64,000 nt of DNA from Adineta vaga (GCA_021613535.1 CP075492.1:558001-622000); one strand, 5' to 3'. Shown: positions 11,215 to 47,362, numbered from the stretch's first letter. Notes: a model not told the origin generated them from the sequence alone. Program-made: numbers and translations.

Positions 11215-11295
11215 CTTGAGGGTGTGGGTGTGGGTGTGGGTGTAGAGGGTGTTAAAGAGCAGACACCCACGCCCACACCCATCCACACCCTCAAG
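11215..11295. repeat. Best-preserved copy of the inverted telomere-like palindrome
   Basis: CTTGAGGGTGTGGGTGTGGGTGTGGGTGT...spacer...ACACCCACGCCCACACCCATCCACACCCTCAAG; ATG on both flanks. Confidence 0.9.
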
Positions 11296-17840: not shown

Positions 17841-20800
17841 TTATTCAAATGATGATTGAAGTTTTTCTACTAACAGGCCAAGTCGATGACGATTGTCATA
17901 TGCTTCCATTTCTTCTAAATGTCCATATGCTAAATCAATTAATTTATCAATACTTTCAGGTTGAATATCGTCTAGGTCAATAGGATTTTCAAGCCATATT
18001 TGCCATCGGTGATAATTCTCATTAAGAACGTTATTAAGATGAAGATCAATATTATTTTGAGGACCATCCATTAGCACTTTGAGTACAGATTGATGATTTC
18101 GAGCCCAAAATAGCAAATTTCGACTTTCATTAGGGTTCAACGGATCGGATACATAATCTCCAGTACCCAACGATAGAAGTCGGATACGATTTTTATCACA
18201 CTTGCGATGAACAGATATAGCTTGATCATAAGCGAACATTGCTGGATTATTTGCTTGTACACCACCATCAACATACAAAACATTTCTAAGTTTATAAGCA
18301 GGAAAATAAGTTGGTGCAGCTGTTGTACACATAAGTACTTCCGTAAGTAGATGATTCTTTGTTCTATCTTTCAGACTAGCCTGTCGTGTGAAAATTTCAG
18401 TGACATTGCCGTCACTTTTTACTGCTGGTATAATCAGTTCGGCTACTGTATCCGAGAGACGTGAACGACCAAAGTAATCACTGAACAACATATGACGACC
18501 TGTATCCAAGTATTTAGATTCTTTTAATAAATAAGTTCGTATCTGACTAATAAAGTTTGCATTTATTGAGAAAACTTGATTCGCTTTTTTACGATAGATT
18601 TCAACTATATCTGCCGCTTGATAACGAGCTTTAGATGAATCAGTCAATGAGGGTGTTGTTAGACCTGCACCAATAATTGCACCAGTCGACGTACCAGCTA
18701 TAACATGAAATATGGACGAAATCGGTTGTCGAATCTTACGTTCTAATGACATTAACCAAATCGCTGGAATGATACCTCGAATTCCACCACCATCAATAGA
18801 TAAAATATTATAAAATGAATGTTCATTACGAAGATTTGAAGAACAAGAGTTCAAATCAATTGGATCATATATTTGTGATCGATCATCTTTCATTTTAATT
18901 GCTTTTTCTTCTCTTTGTATGTCAATATTGTTTCGATCAAGATTTAAAGCTCGCTGAATTCCGAATCTGGCATTATTATAATCACCCATGTTTCGTTGTG
19001 CTTGTGCATAAATTAGCCATAATTCAGCTGATGACAGATGCTGCCGTTCGCCTAGCCGTTCATTAATACGTGAGAATCGATGTTGTTTTAATAGACATCT
19101 ACAAAAGCCTAGTTCAGCTAAATCATGTTGCTCTTTTGAGATGACATTTTCCATCGATAGAATTTCGCTGAAATGATTCTGTGCTTTTTGCCAATTTGCC
19201 AAACCTATTATATAATACAAATATATGTAAAAATAAGCTTTTAGTTTCAAATATTTAATGAAGTGTGATAATGAATTTTTTAAATTCTGAGATGGTATTG
19301 TACGAGAAAATTCAAAAACTATTTGCTGGGAAAGAATATCAAATAACTTCGTATAATCGGCATAAGAAAACATTTCTGTGTTATTAATTAGATGATGCAT
19401 TAAAATCTGCTTTATATATACGTTAATCTATCTAAACAGCATATAACTATACCTGCTAAATGATTTCTCTTATCATCTTGACGAGCTTCATTCTCATAGT
19501 ACTTAGCAATTCGTAGAAGAACTTCTGCTCGTAACGGATGGTTCTTTGGTGTGTCTTCCATTTGCCAATGTAGATGATTTATTTCAATAGGAACAATGGT
19601 AAATATATGGCTAATACGATCATGTCCTGGAAGAACAACTACATATAAATCGTACACTTCAGTTTCCCCACATGTGTAATCTATCACAGCGTGAGATGTT
19701 GTGAAGACCATCCCATATTTCGTGTCAGGAATTATATTACATGGATGTATTTTTAAATTGACAAATGAAGATAGAATCGGTAAATAAGCTTGATGTTTGA
19801 ATATATTTTTAGTTGAATCAAATTGATTTGCCAATTCAGATCGATTTGAAACATGTTCTTGTCGTAAAATTGCAAGAATAAGTTCATTGTCACTTGTGTA
19901 TTTATTCAACATATGAGCAATTAATTGTTCATGAGTCAAACAATGCTTATTTGGTATGAGCTGAGCAAGCATCGCTAATTGATCATCTTCATCATTCGTC
20001 TTTATTATTTTTTGACAAGCATTATATCCAAGATCGGTTTTCAAATATTCAATATTATCAATATCGAATGATTTATTATGATCAATAGCATGTATATTTG
20101 TTGGATTAGTGAAATTTGGACTATCATTATCCATTCCAAATGCGCTCAAAAGATCTTCAAGTGCTTGAATACGTTCATCCGGTATATAGAAAAAACGATC
20201 ATACATTTCATTTTCCGACATTTTTAAGTTTTTTAATGATTGTTTACATCGTTCGTAATTGTCTTTACCTACAAAATAAACATCTATGATTTTTACTTCT
20301 GGTAAAATATTATAAAAATCTAAATCATTTTATCTATTCTATACAGAAGAGAAATAATTGAATGGAATGTTAAAATACTAAAAATTCTGTTAGCTTTATG
20401 TGTGAACCATGAAAGGAAACGAAAGAAAGAGAAAATGGGGAAAAAGTGATCTTCGTGGGATTCGAATTCACACCTTTTGCCATCTGATCAGATCTTCTAA
20501 ACCAGCTAGACTAGAAGAACAATCTTAATATCGAAAATATTCAATTCTATCATCTAATGTTAAAAATAATCTATTGAATAACAGCAATTAGTGTAAATAA
20601 AAATCGAACGTAAAAGATTCTGTAACAAAACTACTGTACCTCCAGCTAATAGACAAGCGATAGCATAATTGAGACGTGCAAGTCTATAATATCCTCTTAA
20701 ACGATTGGTGAATGGAGTTTCGCGTGCATCGACAATATCTTTCTCGGAAATTGTATTAACAATTTTGGAGACGAATCGACCAATTTTTTGATGATGATAA

Positions 20801-26658: not shown

Positions 26659-27021
26659 TTTCAAATAAACAGTTAAATCCAATGATTCCAAAATATCATG
26701 CTTGAGAGTGAGAGAAGAATCAAAGCATGCGCAAATAAACAAATAGATTACGTGCTATACTCATTTATCTCACAAAATACATGCAATAGAAACAATATTA
26801 AATGCAGAAAGAAAAAAATATATATATGACTCACACACTCATAATATGAGTACGTACGACGAAGAATGGATATGCTTATCTGGAAGAATTCAAATGATAT
26901 CTGACTGCGTTAGAAGATTTCCAGAAACTAGAATATATGTATATTGTTTTTTTCTAACAGAAATTTGTATGAAATGATGATAGAAAAAATCATTGCATTC
27001 TTGGTTGATGTGAAACATAAA

Positions 27022-27063
27022 GTGGGTGTGGGTTAACAATATAGCCTCACCCACACCCTCAAG
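27022..27063. repeat. Inverted telomere-like palindrome abutting the truncated GPCR pseudogene
   Basis: GTGGGTGTGGGT-TAACAATAT-AGCCTCACCCACACCCTCAAG. Confidence 0.8.
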
Positions 27064-31306: not shown

Positions 31307-31368
31307 TCTTGAAAGTGCGTGTGTGAGTGTGTGTGATGATCAGGAGAATAACCACACCCACACCCTCA
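31307..31368. repeat. Degenerate inverted telomere-like palindrome between the GPCR pseudogene and SDHA
   Basis: TCTTGAAAGTGCGTGTGTGAGTGTGTGTG-spacer-ACCACACCCACACCCTCA. Confidence 0.7.
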
Positions 31369-31676: not shown

Positions 31677-34159
31677 ATGAGCTTTCTATTGAAAATTCCC
31701 AAATTAATACGTTTTAATGTAAGTATATTTTTTCTAAAATAAAAAAAAGAACAAATTTTCGATTTATTTTTAGTCTATATCACGTTCATTTGCTGTTAAT
31801 ATTTCTCAAAAATATAATATTGATGCAAAACATACAACAAACACACATGTACGATGGAATATTCATTCATTTATTTTTCCTTCTTCTTCTTTTTGTATTT
31901 TATTTTTCCTATTAAATTACTTCAAAATATAAAATAATCGATCATGTCTATGATGCTGTTATTGTTGGTGCTGGTGGTGCTGGTCTTCGTGCTGCATATG
32001 GTTTATCATCAAGCGGTTTTAAAACTGCAGTTATCAGTAAATTATTTCCTACACGTAGTCATACAGTTGCTGCTCAAGGTGGTATCAATGCTGCATTAGG
32101 TAATATGGAACATGATGATTGGCGATGGCATATGTATGATACAGTTAAGGGTTCTGATTGGCTTGGTGATCAGGATGCTATACAATATATGACTCAAGAA
32201 GCCCCACGTGCTATTATAGAAGTATGAAAAATTTCAATTCAATAATCTTTGATTTATTTATTCTTTTTCTCTGTAAAGCTTGAAAATATTGGTTTGCCAT
32301 TTAGTCGAAAATCAGATGGAAAAATTCTACAACGACCTTTTGGTGGTCATACATATAATTATGGTCTTGGTGGAAAAGCACGTCGTTGTTGTTGCGTTTC
32401 TGATCGTACCGGTCATGCTATGTTACATACACTTTATGGCGAAGTAAATATAAAACATTGAAATTTAAATTTAGAAAAAAAGTATTTCTTTATTTTTATA
32501 GTCAATGAAATATGATACAGATTATTTTATTGAATATTTTGCACTTGATTTATTTATGAATCAAGATAATACACAATGTCTTGGTCTTATTGCATTAAAT
32601 CTTGAAGATGGTAGTCTTCATCGATTTCGAGCGAATAATATTGTTTTAGCTACTGGGTAAAAAGAAAAACAAATATGAATTCTTTCGATATATTTATGAT
32701 TTTAGTGGGTATGGACGAGCATATTTTTCATGTACGTCAGCTCATACATGTACTGGAGATGGTAATGCAATGATTACTCGCGCTGGTCTAACAAATCAAG
32801 ATTTAGAATTTGTCCAATTTCATCCAACTGGTTATTTTGATTGTATCGAATTGTAAAATTATGTTAAAGAAAATGTTTTCCTTTTCCAGGTATTATTGGA
32901 GCAGGTTGTCTTATAACAGAAGGCGCTCGTGCTGAAGGTGGTTTTCTTGTTAATAGTAATGGTGAACGTTTTATGGAACGTTATGCACCAGATTTAAAAG
33001 ATCTTGCTTCACGTGATATTGTATCACGTTCAATAGCAACCGAAATTCGTAATGGACGGTATGATATTGCTTCTGAAAGATTTTTCTTTATTTGATTTCT
33101 TTCAATAGGGGTGTTGGAAATTATAAAGATCATATTTATCTTCAATTAAGTCATTTAGATCCAAAAATATTGGATGAAAATTTACTAGGTATTAGTGAAA
33201 CTGCACACATATTTTGTGGCATAGATGTAAAAAAAGAACCAATACCTGTTATACCAACGGTTCATTATAATATGGGTGGTATTCCAACAAATTATAAAGG
33301 TCAAGTTATACAATACAAAGATGGAAAAGATATTATCATTAAAGGTTTATATGCAGCGGGTGAAGCTGCATGTGTTAGTGTTCATGGTGCTAATCGACTT
33401 GGAGCAAATTCTTTATTAGATCTTGTTGTATTTGGACGAGCATGTGCAATAACAATTGCAGAAGAAAATAAACCAGGAGAAATCTCTTCAGAACTCCCAT
33501 TAGTATTATTAGAAACTAGAATAGAATAATAAGAAATCATTTGTTAAAATATATTTTAGGATGCTGGTCAAATATCAATTGAAAATTTGGATAGACTTAG
33601 AAATGCTAATGGTTCAATATCAACAGCAAAACTTCGTTTAAAAATGCAAATGACAATGGAAGAGCATGCAGCTGTCTTTCGTGATGGTGAAACGTTAAGA
33701 AAAGGTTGTAAATTAATGGATAATATCTTTCAAGAACAAAAAGATCTACAATTAAAAGATCGTGGAATTATTTGGAATACAGATTTAATTGAAACACTTG
33801 AATTACAAAATTTATTACTCAATGCTATGCAAACAATTTATGGAGCAGAAGCACGAGAAGAAAGTCGTGGTGCACATGCAAGAGACGATTTTCGTGTAAG
33901 AGAGAGAAAAAAGATAATTTTTATTTGAAAATCATTTTTTGTTTAGAAAAGAATTGATGAATATGATTATTCAAACATAGAAAAGAATCCAATTACTAAT
34001 CAAAAAAAGAAACCAATTGAAAAACATTGGCGTAAACATACATTATCTTATACTGATCCTTCAACTGGAAAAACAATATTAACATATAGACCTGTTATTG
34101 ATAAAACATTAGATGAAAATATTTGTAAATCAATACCACCAATACCTCGTGTTTATTAA
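31677..34159 (+). CDS. SDHA: Succinate dehydrogenase flavoprotein subunit (divergent paralog; one splice acceptor appears lost)
   Basis: Multi-exon. Motifs [103 protein letters not shown]; ends PRVY*. Mitochondrial-type N-terminal exons 31677-31718 and 31774-31848. Confidence 0.93.
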
Positions 34160-34316: not shown

Positions 34317-34368
34317 AGGGTGTGAGTGTGAGTCTGAATCTAACACAAACACCCGCACCCACCCTCAA
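34317..34368. repeat. Degenerate inverted telomere-like palindrome capping the RT fragment
   Basis: AGGGTGTGAGTGTGAGT-spacer-ACACAAACACCCGCACCCACCCTCAA. Confidence 0.7.
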
Positions 34369-35215
34369 TAGTTGGTAGTACAATGGGCTCTGCATTTTCT
34401 TTAACGCTGGCAAATATTTTCATGTGGAAATGGGAAAAGGCATTTGCTCATAGATAAGCAGCTTCGAATGAAATCTATGGCCGGTACGTCTCATTCTTTG
34501 ATTTGAATGTTATCCTAGGCATTTATGTATCTTTTTGTTTACTTCGAACGAATCATTTGGACAAAATTAATGAAATGTTAGATAGAGCCAACAATTTTCA
34601 TCCAAATATTAAACTTGTACGTCAAATTGATTCATGCGTTTCATTTCTGGATCTCCACGTCGAAAATAAGAACGGCGTTTTGGTAACATCAGTACACCAC
34701 AAAGAAGCAGCTCAATCATACGTTGTACCATTTACATCTGATCATCCAAAGCATGTCTACCGAAATGTGATAAGTACAGCTCTACTATGAGCAGTTCGAT
34801 ATTCATCAACACTACTAGCATTCGAAGAAGAACGACGGTGCATCGATTTAATGTTATTATTTAATAGGTAAGTTTTCAGTCCACATTAAAACTAGCCATA
34901 GAAATGTTCATTCTTTCAGATATCCGCCACGATTTATCCATACTCAAATAAATCAATTTTTTCGGCAAAATAAACTCATAGTAACTTTTGACGACATGGG
35001 TGGCGATGAAACCGATTTCAAAATTTTACGTCATCAGTAATTAAAACAACCAATCATGTCTAAAAAAACAATGGTGCACTCTAGAAATTTTTTTCCCTAT
35101 AATCATTCGTCAACAAAAAGATTTATTCTTTCTAGTAAAAGTCTAAACTACCTGATGAGATCCTTCAGTGAGGTCGAAACGCGTCTTGCTTTGCTTTGAC
35201 TCACACCCACACTCT
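34369..35215 (+). mobile_element. 5'-truncated, decayed Penelope-like (Athena/Terminon-type) retroelement fragment with introns
   Basis: GSTMGSAFSLTLANIFMWKWEK (RT motif B), EIYGR|intron (YIDD missing), NFHPNIKL, FLDLHV, TSVHHKEAAQSYVVPFTSDHPKHVYRNVI, intron 34868-34919 then YPPRFI. No GIY-YIG seen. Hammerhead core and CACACCCACAC at the 3' end. Confidence 0.85.
35145..35192 (+). ncRNA. Minimal type-I hammerhead ribozyme motif (stem I degenerate)
   Basis: CTGATGA(35152-35158)-GATCCTTCAGTGAGGTC (stem II)-GAAA-CGCG-TC: conserved core with palindromic stem-III loop and GUC site, as in PLE hammerheads. Proximal stem I does not pair. Confidence 0.7.
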
Positions 35216-35286
35216 TACAAAGGACAAAATCTAGATCACGATTCACTTTCTTTATCGTCAGTTCACACTCAAGGTTTTGTGAGCTG

Positions 35287-36534
35287 TTACACTGCCAGTG
35301 ATAGAGGTGCGACATATTCTGAGCTATTGCAGCGTAAGTAATAGGTTTCAGTCGTCGGCTGCACAAGTGGCAATGGAACACAACGAGTGAGTGATACGTT
35401 GACAAATTTCGGTGATCGAAAAGAAAGATCAAACTCTGACGTAGTGCATTGATCAGACATCAACCAAAATCCGAGTTGTTTTAATTTTCGGATTTTAGAT
35501 ATTGTACCTGGTGCGCAGATTGCATGCACATAAAGAACATCTGCATCACATGGACTAATAATCTGATCTGGCGGACAGATCTGTCGGAATCGAGCATATG
35601 GTGACCGATATGTTGTCACGGCAGCCATTTTACTATGCTGATTTTTAGCATGAAACGGGTGACCAGCAACATGCACCATCGATACCATTTTGACACGATT
35701 GCATGACACTTTTGAATCGCAAACCATATAAGTCTTATTGTGCAAACGCATCAAGGTCATCTGTTCGGTAAGTTTGAACCAACTACGCGATGCTATCCAT
35801 TCTTCGAAACATGATATAACACGATCATTGGGAATTGCATAAAGATGTCCAGTGTTGATTGGCAATTCTCTCATAAATATAAGATCCGCTCCCGTTTTCT
35901 CACTCATTAATTCGTACGCTTTCCAAATATTTTTGGGAGCGAAACTAATGTCTGCATCACTTTTTATTATTGTATATCTTTTCCGAAGAATATCCAAACA
36001 AAGCGGAACCCAATACCACCCAATCGCTTCCCAATATGGTTGACCGTAAGTACCTTCACGTGGTAAAAATGTGTTCTTTTGATAGTTCGGCACATATGAC
36101 GACCCATTATAGCATGGAAGATTTAGCTCGATACAGACAAGTAATGTTACTTCATCAAATGCCACAACAATATAATTGGTTGCTCTAGCAAAACGAACTA
36201 GAGTAAATATGTTATTTTGTAGCATGGCTTGCCAATGCCAGGTGAATCCGAGCATAGTAACTTTTTTTGATTGTTTTGTTACTATCTGTAATAGAGCATC
36301 TAGATCATTATGCATTCCCAGATATGGAAAAAGTGTATTTGATTTGGGAAAAAGCCATGGTGTACCTAGTGCAATAATCGATAATTCTTGCCATTCATTT
36401 TGATTTTTTTTCATCAAGCTTTGAGAGATCATTCGAACTAAAGTCCCATCCCGCAAGGTTTTATATGATGAAAATCTAACAAGTGCTACGACAATAGACA
36501 AAATAGATATTAGGAATATAAATTTTTGCCGCAT
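35287..36534 (-). CDS. Nucleotide-diphospho-sugar transferase (PF03407/GT77-like), type II membrane protein, intronless
   Basis: Likely start MRQKFIFLISILSIVVALVRF (signal anchor; ORF is open to 36705); YIVVAFDE...LNLPCY, LDILRKRYTIIKSDADI (DxD), INTGHLY, EQ, YVHAIC...SKIRKLKQLGFW. Confidence 0.8.
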   Translation of the reverse strand: MRQKFIFLISILSIVVALVRFSSYKTLRDGTLVRMISQSLMKKNQNEWQELSIIALGTPWLFPKSNTLFPYLGMHNDLDALLQIVTKQSKKVTMLGFTWHWQAMLQNNIFTLVRFARATNYIVVAFDEVTLLVCIELNLPCYNGSSYVPNYQKNTFLPREGTYGQPYWEAIGWYWVPLCLDILRKRYTIIKSDADISFAPKNIWKAYELMSEKTGADLIFMRELPINTGHLYAIPNDRVISCFEEWIASRSWFKLTEQMTLMRLHNKTYMVCDSKVSCNRVKMVSMVHVAGHPFHAKNQHSKMAAVTTYRSPYARFRQICPPDQIISPCDADVLYVHAICAPGTISKIRKLKQLGFWLMSDQCTTSEFDLSFRSPKFVNVSLTRCVPLPLVQPTTETYYLRCNSSEYVAPLSLAV

Positions 36535-37493
36535 TGTATACACAAAATCTGAGAAATAAACGTCAATTAAGTTATATTTAACTATGGAGAGAGCTGTCGA
36601 TTGATATATAATTGATGACAGCTGGCTGTTTAGTTTAACAAGAATCACCATTTTCAATGTCAGAATTGAAAGCGTTGACAATATGGTATCTATCATTGGA
36701 GACAACCATCCACTAGACTAAGAATTTTTTCTGGTTCAGTCAATCATTTTTTATTAATGAGAATAGGCAGTGAAGAAAAAGTATGTTTATTTGCGATCGA
36801 CTTCAACCATATTCCCATATAAAAATCAGCATATGTACTTAATACTGAAACACTGATATAGAAATCGTGATTCTGGATAAACTAAACAGTCAGCTGTTAT
36901 CAATTATATATCAGCCGATAGCTCTTTCATAGACGTATCCATTAATGATACTGAATTTTAAAAAAAATTTGCTCCACGGTAAGATACCAACAGAGGCCAA
37001 GTTCTCGAATACTAAACTTTTTTTCTTTTTTCGTCGCTTACTTTTGATGGATATGTGGAGAATATTATATATGCATATATAAAGTTTCAATAGGGTTCAA
37101 TGAAAACTTTTTTTAAAATTGACATAAAAATTTCATTGGAAAAATCAATCAAAAGCAGAAATATAAATTTTCTCAATATATAACAAACGATAATCCCTTT
37201 TATCTTTAAACGCAGGATTTAGACGTATTTTTAATTAGCGTTTTATTTTCCATGTATTTTCTGTGAAGTGCTCTTATTAGGATCATTTTTTTGCTGGTTG
37301 TTCGAATTAAGAACACTGTACCTACAAGAGCTAAAAAAATCAATTTCCAAATTAGTATAACTCAACTATAGTGAATAATAAAACTGTACACCTTTGAATT
37401 TTAATGCATCAAATAATGAGAAACATTTTTTTTGTAAACGAACTATATCGCAATTTTTTTGATTTTCTATATATTTTACACTATATGTGCGTA

Positions 37494-38126
37494 TCAGAAG
37501 ATAGCCCGTGAAATTCTCTACAATACCTTATGAAAAAAGCTGTTCCAACAAATAACTATCGAATTATATTCGGTCAACACTATAATGCTCCAAAACACCA
37601 CATTTTCAAGGGCACATTTTTGCAAAATTAATTATTTCATTTCTTCCAGAAAGCCAGATACGATATCGAGCTTCTTGCTAGCGATCTTCTACAAAAAACG
37701 CTTTGAAATCATCGATCGTCCTTGTTATACATCTCAAGCATTGTAGGAAAACGCTTTACAACATTCTTCTCGTAGCGATATGATAGAGAAAACTCTTTTT
37801 TGCACGTTAGCAATAAAATTGAATATGTAATAATTTGCCATTTATAATAATAAAATTAAAACTGTGATAAACTTTAATTAAAGATTCTTAGAACGTGAAC
37901 AGAGGGGAAAAGGAAAGATTTCGTTCGAGTAAATTTAGAGTATGTCAAAAAAATGATTCGCTGAACCAATAGAGCTATTCATGAGCTACAAAGTGGCTAA
38001 TTCAGTCTCTTTATGTAGGATGAAAACGAGTGCGTTGTAGTGTTGGCCGAATATAATTCCATAGTTATTTGTTGGAGCAGCTCTTTTTATGAGGTATTGT
38101 AGAGAATTTCACAGGCTATCTTCTGA
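37494..38126. repeat. ~95-bp inverted repeat pair enclosing ~440 bp, just upstream of galE
   Basis: 37494-37588 (TCAGAAGATAGCCCGTGAAATTCTCTACAATACC...) is the reverse complement of 38032-38126 with about 9 substitutions. Confidence 0.88.
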
Positions 38127-38219
38127 AAAAAAAACTCAAGCGTCTTTGTCACACTTTGAGTAGAGAAAGATTTCTTCTTTTACAGTTGTATTGTACGCAA
38201 GCATCTATGAAAAACTGAT

Positions 38220-39248
38220 ATGATGTACAAAGTGTTAGTTACGGGTGGTTTGGGTTATATAGGGTCGCATACTACTGTTGAGTTAGTTAATGCAGGGTTT
38301 ACACCTGTGATTGTGGATAATTTGTCGAATTCCCGACTCGAAGTTATTCAACGTATTGAAAAGATAATTGGTTTTAAACCTATCATTCATGTAGTCGATC
38401 TATGTGATATGGCAGCTGTTAAATTTTTATCAGAAAAAGAATGCGATATTCAAGGTATTATTCATTTTGCTGCCTGTAAAGCAGTTGGAGAATCGTCTGA
38501 AAAGCCACTTCTGTACTATAGAAATAACCTAGTTTCTCTGCTAAATATATTAGAAGCATACAAATCGCAGTCGATCAATTTTATTTTCTCTTCCAGTTGT
38601 ACTGTTTATGGTCAACCAGACCAGTTACCCGTTACTGAATCAACACCTATAAAACCTGCTCAATCTCCATATGGCAGAACAAAACAAATGGCTGAGAGAA
38701 TGCTAGACGATGTATCTGCTTCTAATGAGAATATTCGAGTCTTATCACTACGTTACTTTAATCCAGTTGGAGCACATGATTCGGGTCTTATTGGAGAATT
38801 GCCACTTGGTGTACCTCTCAATTTGGTTCCCATTATTACGCAGACCGCAAACAATAAAAGATCAAACTTTACAATTTTCGGTAACGATTACACTACTAAG
38901 GATGGTACGAATGTACGAGATTATGTCCATGTTACCGACATCGCGAAAGCGCATGTCTATGCGCTTAATAAATTATCTAGCTATGAACAATCGTCTAGAT
39001 ATGACGTATATAATCTTAGTACTGGTAGAGGTTATTCAGTTTTGGAGATAATCGAAACTTTCGAAGAAATTTCTGGGGTGAAACTCGATTATAATGTGGG
39101 TCCACGACGTCTAGGTGATGTAGATGAAATTTGGGCTGATGTCCATAAAGCGGAAAACGAGTTAAAATGGAAAGCACAGTTGGACTTGAAAGCGATGTTG
39201 CTATCGGCTTGGCGTTGGGAAAAATCTATTGACGAACAAACTAGGTAG
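38220..39248 (+). CDS. galE: UDP-glucose 4-epimerase, intronless, bacterial-type
   Basis: TGGLGYIGSHT, IHFAACKAVGES, FSSSCTVYG, catalytic YGRTK, LRYFNPVGAH, GELPLGVPLNLVPIITQTA, DGTNVRDYVHV; full length 342 aa. Confidence 0.95.
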   Translation: MMYKVLVTGGLGYIGSHTTVELVNAGFTPVIVDNLSNSRLEVIQRIEKIIGFKPIIHVVDLCDMAAVKFLSEKECDIQGIIHFAACKAVGESSEKPLLYYRNNLVSLLNILEAYKSQSINFIFSSSCTVYGQPDQLPVTESTPIKPAQSPYGRTKQMAERMLDDVSASNENIRVLSLRYFNPVGAHDSGLIGELPLGVPLNLVPIITQTANNKRSNFTIFGNDYTTKDGTNVRDYVHVTDIAKAHVYALNKLSSYEQSSRYDVYNLSTGRGYSVLEIIETFEEISGVKLDYNVGPRRLGDVDEIWADVHKAENELKWKAQLDLKAMLLSAWRWEKSIDEQTR

Positions 39249-39257
39249 ATTGGTGAA

Positions 39258-39301
39258 TTGAGGGTGTGGGTGTGGATACAAGAGACCCACACCCACACCC
39301 T
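39258..39301. repeat. Inverted telomere-like palindrome in the galE-UGM intergenic spacer
   Basis: TTGAGGGTGTGGGTGTGG-ATACAAGAGAC-CCACACCCACACCCT; 15-bp perfect arms. Confidence 0.9.
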
Positions 39302-39409
39302 TTTAAAGTTTGTAGTTTTTCTACGAAACTTTCTTTGGTTTCTGCGCTAAAACCTTTTTTGTTTTCCGCCTACATCGCTTGTGCATTATTATTTTAGATC
39401 AGACAAGCC

Positions 39410-40906
39410 ATGAAAATTATTATTATTGGCTCTGGGCCGTGTGGTTTAGGCGCTGCGTGGCGCGCAGAAGAAGTTATTCGTCAGAGTATGTCTAATTTAT
39501 ATCAGAAATGCACTCAAAGTTTTTGCATAACGTGTCTAGGTTATCAGGGTTTAGAATGGAAAGTAGTTGAGAAGTCCGACAACGCAGGTGGCTTGGCCAA
39601 AACAATCATAGACGATAATGGATTTCTATGGGATATTGGTGCACATGTTATTTTTTCACATTACGCATATTTCACATCGTTACTTGATATAGCTCTTCCG
39701 TTAGAAGAATGGACTGTTAAAAAACGAGAAGCATGGGTGTGGATGCGCGACACATGTATTCCGTATCCACTTCAGCAAAATCTTTATCGTTTACCAACGG
39801 ATGAAATAATACGCTGTATGGATGGGTTACTTGAGGTTGAACAGAAAAGATTGTCCTTTCACAAACCAAAGAACTTTCGTGAGTGGCTTCAACAATCTTT
39901 CGGAAAAGGCTTGTGCGAGACATTCATGTTTCCTTACAATTTTAAAGTCTGGGCTTGTCCTCTGGAAAAAATGAATGTAGAATGGATGGGTGAAAGAGTG
40001 GCTACCGTAGATGTTTCGAAGGTCATCAAAAATGTTATTACAAAGACAGATGACGGAGGTTGGGGTCCGAATAGTACATTTCGCTATCCTAAGCATGGCG
40101 GAACTGGAGCCATTTGGATGGGCCTGTATAAAAAGTTACCGTCTAAGAACTTCGTTTTTTCGAAAAGTGTTACATCTATAGATGTTAAGAAGAAGGAGAT
40201 AATCTATTCTGATGGAGAAAGTGAACATTACGATGCACTTGTATCAACAATGCCGCTGTGTAGTTTATGCCGAGTTGTCAAAGGAACAAATATGTCCCTA
40301 GATGTTCTTCGTCATAAAGCTTCTCAGTTTCGTTATTCTTCGAGTCATATTGTTGGTTTTGGAATGCAAGGGTGTCCTCCTATATTGTTAAGGGACAAGA
40401 CATGGCTTTATTTTCCCGAAGACAACTGTCCATTTTACCGAGTTAGCATATTTTCCAATTTCGCTGAGGATAATGTACCTCGGCCTGGAAAACAATGGTC
40501 ACTGATGTGTGAAATAGCAGAGTCTGTCGATAAACCGATTAATTACAATAATATTATTGAACTTACTGAACAAGGACTAAAAAATACCAAATTAATCGAT
40601 GATAGAACGGAAATTGTGTCGCATTTTCATATACGCTTAGAGTATGGTTATCCGACGCCTTTTTGTGGTCGTGATGCTTTATGCCGAGAAATTTCAGAAG
40701 AACTAGAGGTCTTTGAAATCTATTCACGCGGAAGATTCGGAAGTTGGAAATATGAAATCGCCAATCAAGATCATTCATTAATGCAAGGAGTCGAAGTCAT
40801 TGATCGCATTTTATTCGGCGTAGAAGAAATGACATTTAAGCATTCCAATAGTGTCAATCAAAATAGAGATACGAATGGTAGACAACCACTGCCTTTATCA
40901 TATTAA
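39410..40906 (+). CDS. glf: UDP-galactopyranose mutase, eukaryotic type (UGM/Glf)
   Basis: IIIIGSGPCGLGAA, GGLAKT..D.NGFLWDIGAHVIFSHY, PYNFKVW, WMGERVA, WGPNSTFRYP..GGTGAIW, WLYFPEDNCPFYR, YGYPTP, YSRGRFGSWKYEIANQDHSLMQGVE. Likely in-frame 54-nt GT-AG intron at 39486-39539 (480 aa spliced). Confidence 0.92.
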   Translation: MKIIIIGSGPCGLGAAWRAEEVIRQSMSNLYQKCTQSFCITCLGYQGLEWKVVEKSDNAGGLAKTIIDDNGFLWDIGAHVIFSHYAYFTSLLDIALPLEEWTVKKREAWVWMRDTCIPYPLQQNLYRLPTDEIIRCMDGLLEVEQKRLSFHKPKNFREWLQQSFGKGLCETFMFPYNFKVWACPLEKMNVEWMGERVATVDVSKVIKNVITKTDDGGWGPNSTFRYPKHGGTGAIWMGLYKKLPSKNFVFSKSVTSIDVKKKEIIYSDGESEHYDALVSTMPLCSLCRVVKGTNMSLDVLRHKASQFRYSSSHIVGFGMQGCPPILLRDKTWLYFPEDNCPFYRVSIFSNFAEDNVPRPGKQWSLMCEIAESVDKPINYNNIIELTEQGLKNTKLIDDRTEIVSHFHIRLEYGYPTPFCGRDALCREISEELEVFEIYSRGRFGSWKYEIANQDHSLMQGVEVIDRILFGVEEMTFKHSNSVNQNRDTNGRQPLPLSY

Positions 40907-41792
40907 GAACACGTGGTACTTTATCTCAACTTGAGAGAAGAGAAATACATCGACAAAGACGTGTCTCTTTGATTAGCTGTCTGCCTATAAAACTATTCTC
41001 GATTGACAGGTGGCAAAAAACAGAACACTAGATTGATCTCCAAGGCTTTGTTTGAATAAGGATGTGTGGCTGATTGTGAGGAGAATATCGACGTAAAAAC
41101 TATGCGTAAATGAACAACGAAGGTATAGGTGTAGTAAATGTTATTCGTTTACACTCTTATCCACAAGCAATCAGTTCTCATTTTGAGTCATCCCAGCGAT
41201 TGAATACTTTTTTTTTATCTTCCAAAAGCTGCGATCATTCGATCCTAATGATACAAAGATAGGTCATAACGAAAAGAGAAAAACAAAACAGAAACGATAG
41301 AAAATGTAACATCCAAAGCAATAAAAGTATGCATCATACATAATAAACAGCGTAACAAGGGCAAAAACGTACACACTGTGACGAAAAACTAAATGATGAT
41401 GAAAAATATTCTGTTATTGCTGCAGTGTTTCCTATAATACAGAACATCGTCTTTTATAGATGACATAGCCAAGAACAGAAAAGAAGAAAGCCAAAAGCTA
41501 TTCTTCTCTAAAAATCAAAATATAAAGAACAACTCTTGTAGGCCTTCTTAAACTGTGAAAAGTAACAGTAGAAACCGTTGATGCGACTATGGGTTTCTGA
41601 TTTTACCGATTATTAGAAATAGAAAGGGTTTTCGTTGAAAATTTTTTGGTATCATCGTTCATTCAACTACGACCAAAGGCTGTCTAATTTATGGTTTAAT
41701 CTAAAGCGTTTTGTTAAGGACGATTATGAGCAGTATCATATACAGTTCCATGCAAAGGTTTTGTTCATAGGGTTTCGTTAAATACAATAAAA

Positions 41793-41845
41793 TCTTGAGC
41801 ATGAATGTGGGTGTGAAAGAAGAGGAGATACCAACACCCTCAAGA
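41793..41845. repeat. Inverted telomere-like palindrome copy
   Basis: TCTTGAGCATGAATGTGGGTGTG-spacer-ACCAACACCCTCAAGA. Confidence 0.75.
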
Positions 41846-42058
41846 GAATATTATTTATATATTAAACGAAAAAAAGATATAATCATAGAATATCGTAACT
41901 TTAATCTTTCTAAAAACAAGAATATTGATAAAATAAAGAAAAAAATATAAAAAACAAGAACTTTCTTATTATCTTCGATTTGTGGAAAACATTATCAAAT
42001 AAGTATAAATAACATCCACATCCTCACGAGAAACCACTGAATAGTTTTTGTAATTTGC

Positions 42059-43572
42059 TTACGGTGACAAATAAATATGAAAGGCGATATTGTCACAACT
42101 AGCAATATCAGCTTTTTCTAGTAATTTGTAATTATTAATGGTTCTTAATTTGAACAGAATCTCGACGCGAGTACTCTTTGTCTCAATTTTACCGTTGGAA
42201 ATCAAATCTCTGTAAAGAGTAAAATATGGTGACTGATAAAGCAATGCACTATGATCACAATATTCATCGTGCGTTGAACGAGCTATAAAAGAAAAGAAAT
42301 TTTCAATACTCAATTTAACGATATGTCATGTTTATACTTACAACAAATAGTTATTTTTTCTAAAACTGTTCCATTGGATGTTAAATGACGAAGATTAACA
42401 ATTATATCAATTTGTCCATTCTCTATTCCAGACAATGTAATATTAAAACCATAGAATGCTTGCTTATTTTCAATCCACTTTGAATAATCTCTCAAATCTA
42501 CTTCTTGATACATCGAAGATATATTATAAGATATCACTGGTACAAAATAACATTCGTTATTCAGTTCAATTGTATTTTCGGGATGTATGTTAGTTAAAAT
42601 ACTGCCATTTTGTACAATCCATCCATACGGTAAAGTTGCCGTATTATGTGAACATGTGTATTCTGCATCACCATTGATTAATAAGTTTTTTAATGAAGCA
42701 GTTGTACCATTCGGTAAAATAGCACCTTGAAATGTTAGTACTGTTGATAATTGTTCATCCGATATATTTGATCTATTGAGATTAGCATAAGTAAAAACAG
42801 CTTTACTAACTTTTGCTTTTGTAAAATCAACGTCATTTACGAGAGCGAAACGAAAATCAACATGTGGTAATTGTGTCCAAGAAAAATCAGAACTAGATAA
42901 ATCTGCTTGACTAAAATCAGAGAAATCTAGATTCCGATATCGAAATGATGAATTGATAAGAGAAACACCACGAAGTTGAATTTGAAGTACATTATATACT
43001 GAATATTGACTCTGTCTTAATTTTGGCAAATTCATATCTAAGTTATCTAATTCAGCATCAAATAGATTAATCGATGGATAATCACTTTCTTTTGCAATTA
43101 ACTTTGTTTCATATAGAAATATAATTACTTGCCGTTTTCGTTTACTGTCTAGTTGAAGTAGTGTTGTTAATGTTTTCGCTCGAATGATAGATGAAACGAC
43201 ATGGAATTTATCAAGTGTCATATTTTTGTCTAATAACATCATTGATATATCATGTAGATAGGTAGCTAAGATCCGTTCGTTTTCTGATTGATCAGCCAAA
43301 TATGCATCTTGTTGACGTTCTTGCCATGCAATTTTAAGATCATTTTCACGATTTTTTTCACTTAATTTTGCATGTTGAACCGAAAGTACAGTAGTAGCAA
43401 TACCTAATACTAATGGAACAAGAAGAGTACCAACAATTTTAAGAGTATCTTTAAAATCCATATGCCAAAAATGATTTATTGCTAATGAAATTGTAGACTG
43501 ATTTGAAGATTCATTATTGAAAAGTTCTGTGTTGGTTGATTGATCAGTAGGATTTAATTCCTGATTCTCCAT
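42059..43572 (-). CDS. TM + coiled-coil + pentapeptide-repeat protein, 2 exons
   Basis: Exons 43572-42342 and 42282-42059 (59-nt intron). LKIVGTLLVPLVLGIATTVL; IIRAKTLTTLLQLDSKRKRQVIIFLYE; repeats SDFSQ ADLSS SDFSW...ANLNR; GAILPNGT. Confidence 0.85.
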
Positions 43573-43928
43573 CTACTTTATTTATTTCATTCCATTATAT
43601 ATAATCATCAAAATTATTCAGATAAAATATAAGAATGATATAGAATATCTGTTATATCAAAATTTTAATACATTAGATATATTTAATAATATGTCATTTA
43701 TAGATTTTCACTAACAGTATTTGACTTGTCAAAATGTCCGCTATATCATAGCAAAATAGAAAAAGTTATTGATACCATATGTGCATTTTTCTCAGTCAGC
43801 TTTTATTGATTGATAATTTCAATTATTTTTAATAGAACATATTCTTCTATTATGAAATGTGTATGTAAAAATGAATCTTGTTTGTTAGAAATTAAAAGTA
43901 ACATTATCTTTGATTATAGAATGATGTA

Positions 43929-45476
43929 TTAGTAACTAGGACAGTCACATGAAAATATTTCTTGGCTTGCTCCATTTATTCTAGGTATACAATCAGAACA
44001 AACCATTGCGACAACAGTTGATGGTGGTGGTGGTTCATTCAGATTGGACCATGTTGTTGGCAGTAATGAGCAACCAGATTCAATCCATGGACCAAAACGT
44101 TCGACATCTTTCAATGACAGCATGGGATATTATTTATAAAACATAATAAATATAATATACAACTTACTTTGTCCGTTTACAATATCTCTTACACGTATGG
44201 ATCGAAAGTTTCCAGTTGTTGCATCTCGCTCATATCGAAGTGGTTCAGTGAGTTCAATTGTATTCCATGATGTGATATAAATACCGGTATTACATTTTTC
44301 TTTTGATTGATCAAGTGATAAAGCTGCTGGACATTCTTGTGCATCTTTAAGTTTTATTTGATTACCAATCTCCCAAGATGGAGGAAGGGCCCCACGTGAT
44401 CCATGACCTACGATAGCGTGTGCTGGTCGTTGTGAAAAGCGAGCTGCAAGTTTTTCTTGTTCAACTTGATTTTTAGTAGCCATTCGAGCTGCTACAGATG
44501 AATTTATTCGATGTAAAATTGCAAATTTTAGGTTATTTTTTACCAATGAATTTTGAACAACATCAAACCATGGAATATATTTTTCAATTTTTAATAATGC
44601 TGGATTAGAATTAATCGTTTGTATCCATTGATTTATATTGCTTATATTTGTGTCGCCTCCTATACGATGATCGACTATGATTCTGTGTCTTTTTTCAAAA
44701 TAATTATTATCTAATTTCGTTGTCGAGAATAGGTCATGTTTTAGCTGCAATTTTAATTGTGCATCTGTTAGACCATTTGTAAAATGACTTGATTCCCAGA
44801 TACAATTCTTCAAAAGTACTTGCTGTTCTCGCATACCTCCTAGTTCAGTTTTGACCGCAATATGAGTACCCCATGTGTCCAAAAAATCTACATAACTTTT
44901 GGTATCATATATTGTTGGTAAACTACGAATAGCTTCTTGTGCATACTGATTCAACTGATTTGTGATATTCATAGATTTGATAGTCAACGTATAGATCGGA
45001 TATAAATGCTGAATTATAGCTGGTACTTGATTTTCAACGAAAAAAGTTCTATACATATGTAATATATCTTTAGTATGACCGAATTCTCCACCAAACCAAC
45101 TGCCATTATTTTGTTCCCATATATTTATTGAATCTTGTTCTGTTTTAAATATATGAATATTAGGTTCTACAATTTCAGTACTATTCATTTTGGTGACGAT
45201 AATTTCATTTGGTATCATTGATCTTGTTCTATATGTGAATCGCAAAACAGGTAATTTTATCTTTCCTGAGCTCAAATCAATAGCTATACCGATACCATTT
45301 GATATAGATATTTGTGTATTTTGTTTTGAGAATCGGAATTTATTGGTAGCAAATGGACAAAATACACCATGATAACCAATGAGTGGACAGAACTCTTCAG
45401 AGAGTTTCAATAATAATGACATTTTGACATAGATACATAACAATAAAATTAGTAAAAAGTTGAACATTAAATTCAT
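43929..45476 (-). CDS. Secreted MACPF/perforin-like protein with a Cys-rich C-terminal region, 2 exons
   Basis: Signal peptide; MACPF signature YVDFLDTWGTHIAVKTELGG; RIGGD...WIQTINSNPALL; 60-nt intron 44167-44108 joins the ORFs in frame. Confidence 0.85.
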
Positions 45477-45717
45477 TTTAATTTAACGACAAGGAAAAAT
45501 TTGATGTAAAAGATAGTATATATTTATACATCCATTTATTTTCTTTCCAAGAAATAAATACAAAATTGATAAGCGAGATAAGGCGATTTACTCATATGAT
45601 ATAATTCTTCTATAGTTTCACAATAATAATATTTACTTCAAAGATTTGTCTTCATATTGCGTTTCTTTATAAATGATGAAGCAAATAACATATTAAAGTT
45701 CGTCGAGTATGTTTTAT

Positions 45718-45782
45718 TCTTGAGGATGTGGGTGTGGGTGCGGGTGATACTTTTTTCTTCGCCAACACCCTTACCCTCAAGA
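45718..45782. repeat. Inverted telomere-like palindrome copy upstream of MACPF
   Basis: TCTTGAGGATGTGGGTGTGGGTGCGGGTG-spacer-CGCCAACACCCTTACCCTCAAGA. Confidence 0.85.
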
Positions 45783-46075
45783 TAAAAATCGACGTAACGA
45801 ATTATCCTTGATTATATAGAATTTCTATCACTTTTCATCGCTCATTGCCTGTCAATATTAAAGAGCGAAATCGTGATTCTCGGACTCTCATGCATTCTCT
45901 ATGATATTTTGCAAAATCAATGGAAATCAAAGCATTCTACAATTTCGGATGCCACAGAAGTCAAAGAATCCAGAATCCTGGTATTTTTCCTTTGCATTCC
46001 CTGTATACACGGACGTATCATCGACATCTTGATGATCTTAGCCATTACGTAACGGCCTAAGTGAATTTTCTCCTA

Positions 46076-46119: not shown

Positions 46120-47362
46120 ACTCTACAGTTAGAAAAATGCTTCGTGACGGAATCACTTTTTTCCGTGACGGAATCGCAGGTTTAAAATGTTGAAATTTAG
46201 AGAAATTTTATTTATCCGAAAACATAAATATAGTTCCTCAAAGTTGAGGGTGAGGGTGAGGGTATATGTATAGGTGGGTATAGGTATCCGCATGGGTGTA
46301 TGGCGGAAAGATGGAAAGTGAGTGATAGTTTCAACAAGCATGACTACATACTAATTCTGTCTTCACCTACGATCATACTTACATCCTCGCATATCCGTAC
46401 CATTAGTCCTTCACACCCTCACTATTTCCCACCCACACACCTACCCCCTTCCGAATCGACATCCTCTTCCAACTCATTCTCACAGTAAAAACCACACCTA
46501 CACTCTGATCTATGCGGTACTTGAATCTTCTCCGCGCCCCGTTTATTAATTAGTAGGATGTGATAAGAAAAAAAAGTGTTTTTGCTAATTCAGGTAAACA
46601 AACTGATTACCTGTTGGTGATTCCGTCACACTCGTTCGAAGTAACTTGAATGCCTTTTAAAAAGCAATGCAGTGCATCTGATAGAGCATGAAAAACTAGC
46701 GTTGGGGCATATATACACGAAATCTAAACCTTCCTACTTAAGGCAGAAAAAGAACTACAGAGTATTTTACGTGACGGAATCACATTCAGAAGTGCACTGC
46801 TTTATCAAAGCGAATATTTTTTTCAAGAAATGATGAATTCCAGATTTAACGACATAAATGAAGGGTCCATGTGAGTTGCATGTGCATCATATAATTAACT
46901 TTAGAAACAATAACATCTCTTAGTGAAAAAAAATCAGATCATAATCAAGGCGTATTTCCTAGTTATAAGTGGTCCCTCGAGTGCATCTCATACCACCAAG
47001 TTTTTTTTAAAGAAAGATACACCCATTGAGTTAAAAAATGCGCTTTCCGACGTTATCGATGATGCTCTACAAGATGTATATATTGGTTTTCTCCAATTGC
47101 ATATATCGACTTTCCTCACACTGGTGGACCGTTACGTGGACAGGTCGATCTGCAACCAATTCAACCAATTCTAATCCAAGAATTAGAACTGGTGCATTCC
47201 TAATAAGCGTAACATATGACATAAAAAACTTTACAGAGCAGAGTTTTCTCTACAAAACCTTGTGGACGATTTTTTCTCAAAAACGATGGGAAATGTATGG
47301 AGCAAATTCTAATACAATACTTCATATAATAGTTCTCTTAAAAGTCCTATTTGTACGGTAAG
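46120..47362. mobile_element. Probable non-coding transposon remnant(s) containing (TGAGGG)3 and degenerate G/C-rich arms
   Basis: GTGACGGAATC repeated at ~46145, ~46165 and ~46771 and inverted at ~46620; (TGAGGG)3 at 46245-46262. No matched TIR pair found. Confidence 0.35.

Follow-up and report, generated by a model that had tools for sequence, protein, structure and literature searches.

A glycosyltransferase gene, a bacterial-type galE and a UDP-galactopyranose mutase gene juxtaposed among telomere-repeat seams of the bdelloid rotifer Adineta vaga, with a predicted route to UDP-galactofuranose

General features of the locus

The window, i.e. the whole stretch of 64,000 nucleotides that was analysed (GCA_021613535.1, CP075492.1:558001-622000), is located approximately 0.6 Mb from the end of A. 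vaga chromosome 3. Between positions 35287 and 40906 it contains three intact, open reading frames, encoding a glycosyltransferase (GT) on the minus strand, and a UDP-glucose 4-epimerase (GalE) and a UDP-galactopyranose mutase (UGM) on the plus strand. The original prediction of this trio was borne out by the open reading frames, and profile and structure matches confirmed the identities of the products. Its description of the genes as being of mixed ancestry also holds, with an intronless bacterial-type GalE, a eukaryote-type UGM with one intron, and a type-II anchored GT-A transferase. No nucleotide-sugar transporter was found at the locus.

GT and GalE are divergently oriented and separated by a 1.7 kb spacer (36535..38219), in which no telomeric tract was seen and which contains two foldbacks, one with 67-nt arms (36587-36653 and 36862-36928) and one with 95-nt arms (37494-37588 and 38032-38126). 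The GalE stop codon and the UGM ATG, both on the plus strand, are 161 bp apart, a distance that had been given correctly. The region was initially described as full of pseudogenes; this applies to an FAD-binding fragment located left of the GT (33092-33529) and to an aldo-keto reductase gene that is broken in two parts, and does not apply to several genes adjoining the trio, which are intact. In an independent DNA run from 2013 the entire stretch was found on one contig with a depth of 58. Based on this contig, the UGM intron and the flanking rotifer telomere tracts, the possibility of a contaminant, which had also been raised, can be discarded.

The glycosyltransferase gene

The GT open reading frame covers positions 35287-36705 on the minus strand, with the ATG at 36534 as its likely start, resulting in a CDS (35287..36534) of 415 aa. 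The protein displays a hydrophobic N-terminal signal anchor of type II (residues about 5-20, in both the sequence and the predicted model), followed by a GT-A domain with many conserved Cys residues. Its match to PF03407 is above the gathering score (49.7 bits versus a cut-off of 22), and this modest score covers profile positions 4-160 of 208 (157/208). D193 and D195 of the D193-x-D195 motif and five Cys are invariant among 24 sequences. The AF2 model (pLDDT 87.1, pTM 0.86) adopts a GT-A fold, for which Foldseek matched only retaining GT-A enzymes, belonging to GT8, GT34 and GT6, with probabilities of 0.99-1.00 and E-values of merely about 3e-3.

GT is present as a single copy in the A. vaga genome and has orthologues in Adineta and Rotaria with 50-60% identity; the orthologues and homologues all belong to PF03407, and dN/dS between bdelloid lineages ranges from 0.24 to 0.47. 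The nearest relatives are uncharacterised bdelloid proteins, proteins of eukaryotic microbes, and epimerase fusions from chytrids and blastoclads. These fusions, in which a PelX/WbpP-like 4-epimerase is joined to PF03407, represent seven of the 20 long homologues, one of which carries a nucleotide-sugar transporter as well, and they form a sister subfamily that is separate from the rotifer GT clade. The A. steineri orthologue has as neighbours a GT71 and a further gene of the SDR epimerase family; this SDR shows only 22% identity to the GalE of the window, and its A. vaga homologues are located elsewhere.

As family comparison we used CAZy GT77/PF03407, which comprises the plant RGXT xylosyltransferases, the RRA and XEG113 arabinofuranosyltransferases, and AgtA, an alpha-galactosyltransferase of Dictyostelium. 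The GT of the window resembles this family by its above-cut-off match, type-II anchor, DxD motif and retaining GT-A fold, but is not close to any characterised member. Since GT77 is classed as a retaining family and the Foldseek matches were exclusively retaining, the enzyme, if given UDP-alpha-D-Galf, would be expected to yield rare alpha-Galf; the characterised eukaryotic Galf transferases are, to our knowledge, inverting and belong to other families. We know of no sequence signature for the use of furanose donors within GT77/PF03407. Nematodes, which synthesize Galf, possess many PF03407 proteins. The 4-epimerases fused in the related subfamily suggest pyranose Gal or GalNAc as the donor, and UDP-Gal or UDP-GalNAc, pyranose UDP-sugars that a 4-epimerase delivers, are thus more likely donors than UDP-Galf. 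Furanosyl (Araf) transferases do occur among the GT77 members (PMC3355594); no observation supports the tie to furanose donors that had been proposed for this GT, and the Foldseek result and the fusions of the sister subfamily point elsewhere.

The UDP-glucose 4-epimerase gene

GalE (38220..39248, plus strand) is an intronless gene for a bacterial-type protein of 342 aa, which scores 389.2 bits with the TIGR01179 equivalog model (cut-off 262.3). The GxxGxxG NAD site and the Ser / Tyr-x3-Lys triad are kept, and the segments GGLGYIGSH, FSSSCTVYG and SPYGRTK align with the same residues of solved GalE structures. The gatekeeper residue is Ile304, which corresponds to Cys307 in human GALE, and not Tyr; the protein is predicted to interconvert UDP-Glc and UDP-Gal, and given Ile304 it could possibly act on UDP-GlcNAc as well.

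The best named relatives all belong to Mucilaginibacter (Sphingobacteriaceae), with 61-64% identity over 98-99% of the length. The Mucilaginibacter proteins have the same length, triad and NAD motif and are likewise encoded without introns, but the GalE of the window lies in an animal chromosome, with rotifer telomere-repeat tracts on either side, has a GC content of 35-38% and, unlike its bacterial counterparts, coexists with a native, multi-exon GALE (on C1 and C4). Ten metagenome or Logan proteins exceed Mucilaginibacter in identity (69-79%); telomere-type tracts on both sides of one of these, L027, show that it comes from a bdelloid. The bacterial-type GalE is present as a single copy in A. 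vaga. Between bdelloid lineages GalE has a dN/dS of 0.06-0.09, with saturated dS.

The UDP-galactopyranose mutase gene

UGM (39410-40906, plus strand) encodes a eukaryote-type enzyme and is composed of exon 1 (39410..39485), which contains the FAD-binding GxGxxG, and exon 2 (39540..40906), separated by an intron of 54 nt (39486..39539, GTATGT...CTAG) that is in frame and open. Spliced homologues lack the intron stretch, and the corresponding site of the paralogue contains stop codons, so that the single intron originally proposed is supported from both sides. Its removal gives UGM the same length as the homologues of A. ricciae, Rotaria and protists. The intron position is common to both paralogues and missing in protists.

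The protein aligns with the UGMs of Trypanosoma cruzi (4DSG; E 3e-132, residues 40-488 on 28-473) and Aspergillus fumigatus (3UKA; E 5e-123, full length), and all 14 of its 14 PDB matches are UGMs and not merely members of the amine-oxidase superfamily. Similar to these two enzymes, with which it shares full-length homology and the FAD-binding motif, it possesses the ERVA, FRYPxxGGTG, PFYR, YGYPTP and GRFGxWKY motifs; the one exception among the eukaryotic-UGM motifs checked is the histidine loop, which reads G-A-H instead of G-G-H. Of the four type-A orthologues scanned, three have GAH like the UGM of the window, and in P0021 the motif was not found; type B UGMs, protists and bacteria have GGH. 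As the lineage carries GAH rather than GGH, the activity of the UGM of the window is not assured.

Like glf-1 of C. elegans, this UGM is present in an animal. It differs from the T. cruzi and A. fumigatus enzymes (414-445 bits) by its loop and by being nearer to protist, algal and Gemmatimonadota-like sequences (520-660 bits). In the UGM tree, the bdelloid sequences form one clade among contigs of intron-poor eukaryotes (L030 and L031, the latter with a Sec23-like protein that is just 30-32% identical to that of A. vaga); Vitrella and MMETSP sequences follow next outward, and the bacteria are placed at the other side. UGM is nested among protist contigs and was therefore acquired horizontally, instead of being a gene that animals have in common. 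A. vaga has two UGMs, the second being an unlinked paralogue on C4. Between bdelloid lineages UGM has a dN/dS of 0.08, also with saturated dS; with dN/dS values of about 0.06-0.09, purifying selection on both GalE and UGM is strong across the bdelloid lineages.

Transcript structure

A polypyrimidine-AG acceptor-like motif is located at 39384-39397, 12 nt upstream of the UGM ATG; the motif is also present in species without GalE upstream of UGM, and an acceptor-like motif precedes the GalE ATG as well. No poly(A) signal (AATAAA) was found in the 161-bp spacer. The short spacer, its missing AATAAA and the acceptor-like motif are at most circumstantial signs of an SL trans-spliced GalE-UGM operon. 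The NCBI model joins GalE and UGM in one gene and uses a variant intron of 60 nt starting from 39480; this fusion looks like an artefact. Three runs guessed to be RNA yielded no contigs on the stretch, which is no proof of silence.

Telomere-repeat seams and blocks

The window contains 16 telomeric tracts, where 0.07 would be expected by chance; the telomeric hexamer of A. vaga is TGTGGG (PMC7943196). One head-to-head seam is located between GalE and UGM (39259..39301) and is composed of the G-tract TGAGGGTGTGGGTGTGG (39259-39277), a spacer of 10 nt, and the facing C-tract CCCACACCCACACCC (39283-39301). The seam tract recurs on other contigs of run X1 with different flanks. The block containing GT and GalE is delimited on its left (35153..35214, plus strand) by a hammerhead-like core, CTGATGAG...CGAAAC, followed by the C-strand telomeric tract ACTCACACCCACACTC about 75 nt past the GT stop codon. 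An Rfam search at this boundary found no hammerhead, and the ribozyme is a motif match only. The block with UGM, which also contains a pentapeptide-repeat gene and a MACPF gene, ends on the right at a further head-to-head telomeric seam (45724..45790) with the ends CTTGAGG...CCCTCAAG.

A hammerhead ribozyme followed by (ACACCC)n is a described 3'-end architecture of retroelements, and host genes have been reported to be captured between Athena/Terminon-type units (PMC6431247). In its sequence, the left boundary, with its hammerhead-like core and (ACACCC)-type tail, resembles the 3' end of such an Athena/Terminon retroelement joined to a former chromosome end, and similar to bdelloid Athena/Terminon subtelomeres the window is cut into gene-sized blocks by G-tract/C-tract junctions. 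Orthologous GalE (L027) and GT (L021, L022 and L039) genes are likewise bounded by telomere tracts. The seam described here happens to separate exactly the genes of two enzymes that act in succession in one pathway, which is why the locus looked like an engineered cluster.

Linkage in other bdelloids

Linkage was compared at L026, L027, L028, L029, L021, L022-24, L039 and the C4 paralogue; L025 was left out of the count because its contig ends there. No UGM was found in the 5 kb downstream of the GalE orthologue on L026 or in the 560 bp downstream of that on L027, and no GalE in the 1.5 kb upstream of the UGM orthologue on L029 or in the 635 bp upstream of that on L028. Neither gene is present within 10 kb of the GT orthologues in A. 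steineri, A. ricciae and Rotaria, and the UGM paralogue on C4 has unrelated neighbours, the partner genes being absent. Conservation of the linkage was the check that the original prediction had set for itself, and it fails at every testable bdelloid locus. The trio is a species-specific juxtaposition and not a conserved metabolic gene cluster.

Origin and possible role of the three genes

We consider it reasonably probable that foreign genes were joined here by chance, that two of them provide UDP-Galf, and that the GT uses a pyranose donor. The region is a subtelomeric patchwork in which short telomere-repeat tracts, placed back to back, join blocks of the size of genes, and two adjoining blocks contain three foreign, intact genes. 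GalE derives from a Bacteroidota-like bacterium and would convert UDP-Glc into UDP-Galp in the cytosol, besides the native GALE; UGM derives from a protist, later acquired a spliceosomal intron and a second copy, and would contract UDP-Galp to UDP-Galf. The biochemical logic of GalE followed by UGM, as originally proposed, is upheld by the gene identities, and bdelloids very likely possess a horizontally acquired UDP-Galf supply route, predicted from their gene content, which is new. The GT is a type-II anchored, retaining-type GT-A enzyme of the PF03407/GT77 kind, probably of the Golgi/ER lumen, where it would transfer a sugar to glycans that are secreted or displayed on the surface. GalE and UGM probably became neighbours in the A. 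vaga lineage through cap-and-join at a chromosome end, and were neither transferred nor selected as a unit. If any functional pair exists, GT and GalE, with their common block, are better candidates than GT and UGM.

The original prediction saw a selected supply-isomerise-transfer cluster, in which GalE provides UDP-Galp, UGM converts it to UDP-Galf and the GT places Galf or Araf on cuticle, egg or secreted glycans. On this reading, selection would keep the genes linked, and they might be transcribed together. The genes for successive steps adjoin each other in the order of the pathway, all genes are intact though their neighbourhood decays, the GalE-UGM spacer combines an acceptor-like motif with the lack of a poly(A) signal, and both the furanosyltransferases of GT77 and the many PF03407 proteins of Galf-making nematodes fit such a role. 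We nevertheless regard a co-adapted trio as unlikely: linkage is missing at every other readable bdelloid locus, a telomeric seam separates GalE from UGM, a second UGM is located elsewhere, the retaining fold would lead to alpha-Galf whereas the eukaryotic Galf transferases known to us are inverting, and neither a nucleotide-sugar transporter nor contigs from the three putative RNA runs were found. In a second reading the functional pair consists of GT and GalE: GalE would supply an alpha-Gal(NAc) transferase with UDP-Gal or UDP-GalNAc, and UGM would be an incidental gene joined later. GT and GalE share one block, divergently and without a telomeric tract between them, and the seven epimerase fusions of the sister subfamily (one with a transporter), the SDR epimerase-family gene and GT71 beside the A. 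steineri orthologue, the Ile instead of Tyr gatekeeper and the membership of AgtA in GT77 agree with this pairing. It appears improbable as well, given that no GalE lies close to the GT of A. steineri, A. ricciae or Rotaria, that the L027 GalE stands alone between telomere tracts, that the fusion clade is distinct from the rotifer clade, and that the A. steineri SDR shares only 22% identity with GalE, with its A. vaga homologues elsewhere.

That the three genes are silent passengers of subtelomeric junk, with frames still open due to recent arrival or chance, would fit the missing RNA contigs and a region rich in telomere seams and gene fragments. This is very improbable in view of the low dN/dS of GalE and UGM over saturated dS, of an intron that was gained and then kept at one position in both UGM paralogues, and of intact orthologues in several species; moreover, missing Logan contigs do not prove silence.

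As a counter-point to chance joining, two consecutive enzymes encoded 161 bp apart on the same strand would be unlikely by pure chance, since A. vaga has one bacterial-type GalE and just two UGMs; a rough estimate, which is not a computed value and precedes correction for the many windows scanned, is 1e-3 to 1e-4. Co-transcription of the two genes would fit the spacer without a poly(A) signal, the acceptor-like motif and the merged NCBI model.

Gene content of the locus

Three intact genes are present at 35287-40906 of the window, as the original prediction had stated. This is confirmed by reading frames open at the predicted coordinates for all three genes, by family matches, and by the 161-bp gap between the GalE stop codon and the start of the UDP-galactopyranose mutase (UGM) gene. 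The window (G000:C3:558001-622000) belongs to an assembly of 100.8 Mb in six contigs. For the glycosyltransferase (GT), on the minus strand, the most plausible start codon is the ATG at 36534; the resulting protein has 415 aa, an N-terminal hydrophobic anchor (MRQKFIFLISILSIVVALV) and a PF03407 match above cut-off. GalE (38220-39248, plus strand) scored 389 bits against the NCBIfam GalE equivalog model (cut-off 262), aligned end to end with solved GalE enzymes, and has kept the NAD motif and the Ser/Tyr-x3-Lys triad. For UGM (39410-40906, plus strand), all PDB matches were UDP-galactopyranose mutases, the best being that of T. cruzi (E 3e-132).

Residues 26-43 of the open UGM frame are without counterpart in spliced or intronless homologues, and the second A. 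vaga UGM copy, on contig C4, carries stop codons at the corresponding site. Since removal of 39486-39539 (GTATGT...CTAG, 54 nt) gives the UGM length of A. ricciae, Rotaria and protists, this segment is, by comparison, a probable intron that is in frame by chance. Searches with UGM used the open unspliced frame; joined exons were used only for the tree, dN/dS and motif comparison. In the C4 paralogue, X replaced the stop codons of the intron for the tree, dN/dS, intron and motif comparisons. The NCBI model P0020 (777 aa) joins GalE and UGM in one protein. It removes 28 residues, including the FSSS catalytic-serine segment, from an otherwise colinear bacterial ORF, and bypasses the GalE stop via an intron of ~200 nt across a telomere seam (a head-to-head junction of G-tract and C-tract telomeric repeats); on both grounds, this fusion is probably a prediction artefact.

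Origin of the three genes

Among the 120 best matches to GalE, all named proteins were Mucilaginibacter GalE (61-64% identity), and ten unnamed metagenome or Logan proteins reached 69-79%. One of these ten lies on contig L027, whose flanking rotifer-type telomere tracts assign it to another bdelloid. The native GALE genes of A. vaga are multi-exon and located on contigs C1 and C4. Since the named matches all belong to Mucilaginibacter and the native genes differ from this one in exon structure and location, the sequence comparison identifies GalE as a bacterial acquisition.

In the UGM tree, the bdelloid sequences fall into a single clade that splits three ways. Type A comprises the window gene together with A. 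ricciae and metagenome contigs, type B comprises the A. vaga C4 copy, Rotaria and A. steineri, and the third branch joins Didymodactylos with contigs of an intron-poor eukaryote. The bdelloid clade lies inside further intron-poor eukaryote contigs, followed outwards by Vitrella and MMETSP sequences, with Gemmatimonadota-like bacteria across the root. The Sec23-like protein of L031, a eukaryotic-microbe contig, is only 30-32% identical to A. vaga Sec23, so that this contig is not from a rotifer. Vertical metazoan inheritance of UGM was rejected, as no nematode or other animal UGM occurred among the 120 best matches to the window gene and protist contigs intermingle with the bdelloid clade in the tree; a protist-to-bdelloid transfer would be the simplest reading. 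The C4 copy (G000:C4:7951433-7952929, loci L002/L018) is a pan-bdelloid paralogue, 62% identical to the window copy and at most 89% identical to its nearest type-B relatives, whose clade also takes in the proteins of Rotaria and A. steineri. Its intron is at the matching position, and since this position is common to both types, intron gain is placed before the A/B duplication.

Orthologues of the GT were found in A. steineri, A. ricciae and Rotaria (50-60% identity), and its next relatives beyond bdelloids are uncharacterised eukaryotic-microbe proteins. The mixed ancestry proposed for the parts was thus upheld by a Mucilaginibacter-like intronless GalE and a protist-nested UGM with an intron. 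A contaminant origin of the locus was rejected on the basis of the UGM intron, the rotifer telomere tracts on the flanks, the chromosome-scale setting of the locus, and an independent run of 2013 in which the stretch lies within one 11.4-kb contig at depth 58.

Selection and predicted function

Between bdelloid lineages, dN/dS was 0.06-0.09 for GalE, 0.08 for UGM and 0.24-0.47 for the GT, with dS saturated. The UGM motifs are kept with one exception, the flavin-side histidine loop, which reads G-A-H in the window UGM and in three of the four type-A orthologues scanned (P0022, P0023 and P0027; the motif was not found in P0021), whereas G-G-H is otherwise universal (type B, protists and bacteria); this change may point to an altered activity or substrate. 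From their sequences, GalE and UGM are plausible as a UDP-galactofuranose (UDP-Galf) pathway. Three runs presumed to be RNA gave no contig over the stretch, and the matches came only from 2013 DNA-like runs.

Telomeric seams and gene linkage

The original prediction regarded the three genes as a candidate cluster and named conservation of their linkage across bdelloids as its test; linkage fails in every locus that could be read. Contigs with a GalE orthologue were without UGM (L026, in the 5 kb downstream; L027, in the 560 bp downstream) and contigs with a UGM orthologue were without GalE (L029, in the 1.5 kb upstream; L028, in the 635 bp upstream), L026 and L028 coming from one common sample. 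Neither GalE nor UGM lies within 10 kb of the GT in A. steineri, Rotaria or A. ricciae, and the neighbours of the C4 UGM are an M14 peptidase and other unrelated genes.

The telomeric hexamer of A. vaga is TGTGGG (PMC7943196). The 161-bp spacer between GalE and UGM consists in part of TGAGGGTGTGGGTGTGG, ten bases, and then CCCACACCCACACCC. In the window, 16 telomeric tracts were found against 0.07 expected by chance, with G-tract/C-tract junctions at about 11250, 27040, 31335, 34335, 39280 and 45760. Tracts are positioned at 10623-11293, 27021-27061, 31321-31368, 34318-34362, 35199-35214, 39259-39301, 45724-45790 and 46248-46503; most are head-to-head and divide the whole window into gene-sized blocks, and several seams have common outer ends (CTTGAGGG... 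/ ...CCCTCAAGAT). One block (35215-39258) holds the GT and GalE, and the next (39302-45723) holds UGM, a pentapeptide-repeat gene and a MACPF gene. At the left edge of the first block, a hammerhead-like core (CTGATGAG-N15-CGAAAC, 35153-35185) lies directly upstream of a C-strand telomeric tract. Core plus tract match the 3' terminus published for Athena/Terminon elements; these elements attach to the ends of chromosomes, and host genes become captured between them (PMC6431247). Rfam gave neither a hammerhead nor any other family at gathering threshold, and a search at E<=1 brought up nothing relevant. The GalE orthologue in L027 and the GT orthologues in three further loci (L021, L022 and L039) are likewise bounded by telomere tracts.

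Given the seam in the spacer and the absence of linkage in the other loci read, we infer that capping and joining of ends brought GalE and UGM together in the A. vaga lineage, and that the two were neither transferred jointly nor kept as a unit since ancient times. The proposed three-gene cluster was therefore not borne out. A point in favour of coupling between GalE and UGM is that a single-copy GalE stands beside a UGM of which the genome has two copies, with both genes on the same strand and following the order of the pathway. This arrangement is improbable a priori, although the improbability is weakened by the very many windows screened. The spacer is also without an AATAAA-type signal, and a polypyrimidine-AG motif stands 12 nt before the UGM ATG; however, the motif is likewise found upstream of type-A UGM in species without GalE upstream, and so supports a spliced UGM 5' end and not an operon. 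The 5' end of UGM is probably made by splicing, and spliced-leader trans-splicing is known in rotifers.

The GT-GalE spacer contains two foldbacks, 37494-37588 / 38032-38126 (95-nt arms, 91% complementarity) and 36587-36653 / 36862-36928 (67-nt arms, 87% complementarity, one arm 53-119 nt before the start codon of the GT), which may be MITE-like insertions. Five other genes of the window are probably foreign or expanded (42310-43572 and 44130-45476, minus strand; 13557-14324 and 7133-9184, plus strand; 17841-19400, minus strand); they encode two pentapeptide-repeat, one MACPF, one ART-domain and one patatin-TPR protein.

Fold and donor of the transferase

The AlphaFold model of the GT has a confident GT-A fold (pLDDT 87). 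Foldseek matches were weak (E about 3e-3) but uniform, all being retaining GT-A enzymes (XXYLT1, glycogenin, LARGE1, XXT1, PBCV-1 A64R and alpha-3-GalT), and at such E-values specificity is not readable from structure. A PDB sequence search with the GT gave a chance match only. D193-x-D195 and many cysteines are invariant among the aligned homologues, a pattern that fits a lumenal enzyme. The GT77 family includes an alpha-galactosyltransferase. Xylosyl- and arabinofuranosyl-transferases also belong to it (PMC6646851, PMC3355594), and since its donors are varied, family membership leaves the donor unfixed. A retaining GT using UDP-alpha-D-Galf would yield alpha-Galf, a linkage that is natural but rare, occurring for example in a sponge glycolipid (PMC7278926).

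In seven of the 20 long GT homologues scanned (P0267, P0271, P0275, P0281, P0287, P0297 and P0309), a PelX/WbpP-like UDP-hexose(NAc) 4-epimerase is fused to PF03407. Two are unnamed and five come from named chytrid or blastoclad hosts (Gaertneriomyces, Dinochytrium, Allomyces twice, and Catenaria); P0267 also has a nucleotide-sugar transporter domain. We know of no description of the epimerase-PF03407 architecture. As a Rosetta-stone signal in sequence, it links the wider GT subfamily to 4-epimerase products, and the fusion clade is separate from the rotifer GT clade in the GT tree. The fungal phyla with these fusions are predicted to make UDP-Galf (PMC8092308), so the fusions are compatible with a Galf donor. 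With low confidence, we rank pyranose Gal or GalNAc above Galf as donor.

In A. steineri (L021:4173-8941), one neighbour of the GT orthologue is an SDR epimerase/dehydratase-family protein of 683 aa whose C-terminal part is DUF7796-like. A GT71 (PF11051) gene also adjoins, with telomere tracts between all of these, forming a different glyco-gene neighbourhood. The SDR protein was rejected as a GalE orthologue (22% identity, with its A. vaga homologues located elsewhere).

Predicted galactofuranose in bdelloids

To our knowledge, galactofuranose is absent from vertebrates. Its documented animal sources are nematodes, some sponges and starfish (PMC7278926). The literature searched contained no mention of UGM or Galf in rotifers. 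Each part of the locus is of a known family, and both the joining process and horizontal gene transfer in bdelloid subtelomeres are already known; what appears new is a putative selected, foreign UDP-Galf route in bdelloid rotifers. The presence of Galf in bdelloids is a concrete prediction from two UGM paralogues under selection together with a dedicated GalE of bacterial type; if borne out, it would extend the known gains of bdelloids by gene transfer to a foreign surface sugar.

The most far-reaching reading is a working surface-glycan module for Galf (or another rare sugar), with its parts supplied by three donors, one bacterial, one protist and one a fungus-like eukaryote, and united by telomere capping and joining of free DNA ends. 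GalE and UGM would then be expressed as a single transcription unit that splicing resolves, and the GT would use their product. We consider this reading very unlikely; if true, an animal would have put together a metabolic cluster resembling an operon, newly made out of foreign genes. The locus is a clean example of how subtelomeric telomere-seam joining can juxtapose consecutive pathway enzymes. Such joining offers raw material for the evolution of clusters and operons, and adjacency in such genomes is weak evidence of functional coupling.

An intact 575-aa ORF on contig C1 (G000:C1:1100774-1101772; L038:910-2637, minus strand) carries PF03214 (456 bits) fused to a GT2-like PF13704 domain. 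It was rejected as a relative of the GT, its transferase part being GT2-like and not PF03407. The PF03214 domain is a plant-type RGP / UDP-arabinopyranose mutase, and the genome thus holds a second furanose-type nucleotide-sugar mutase of a non-animal kind.
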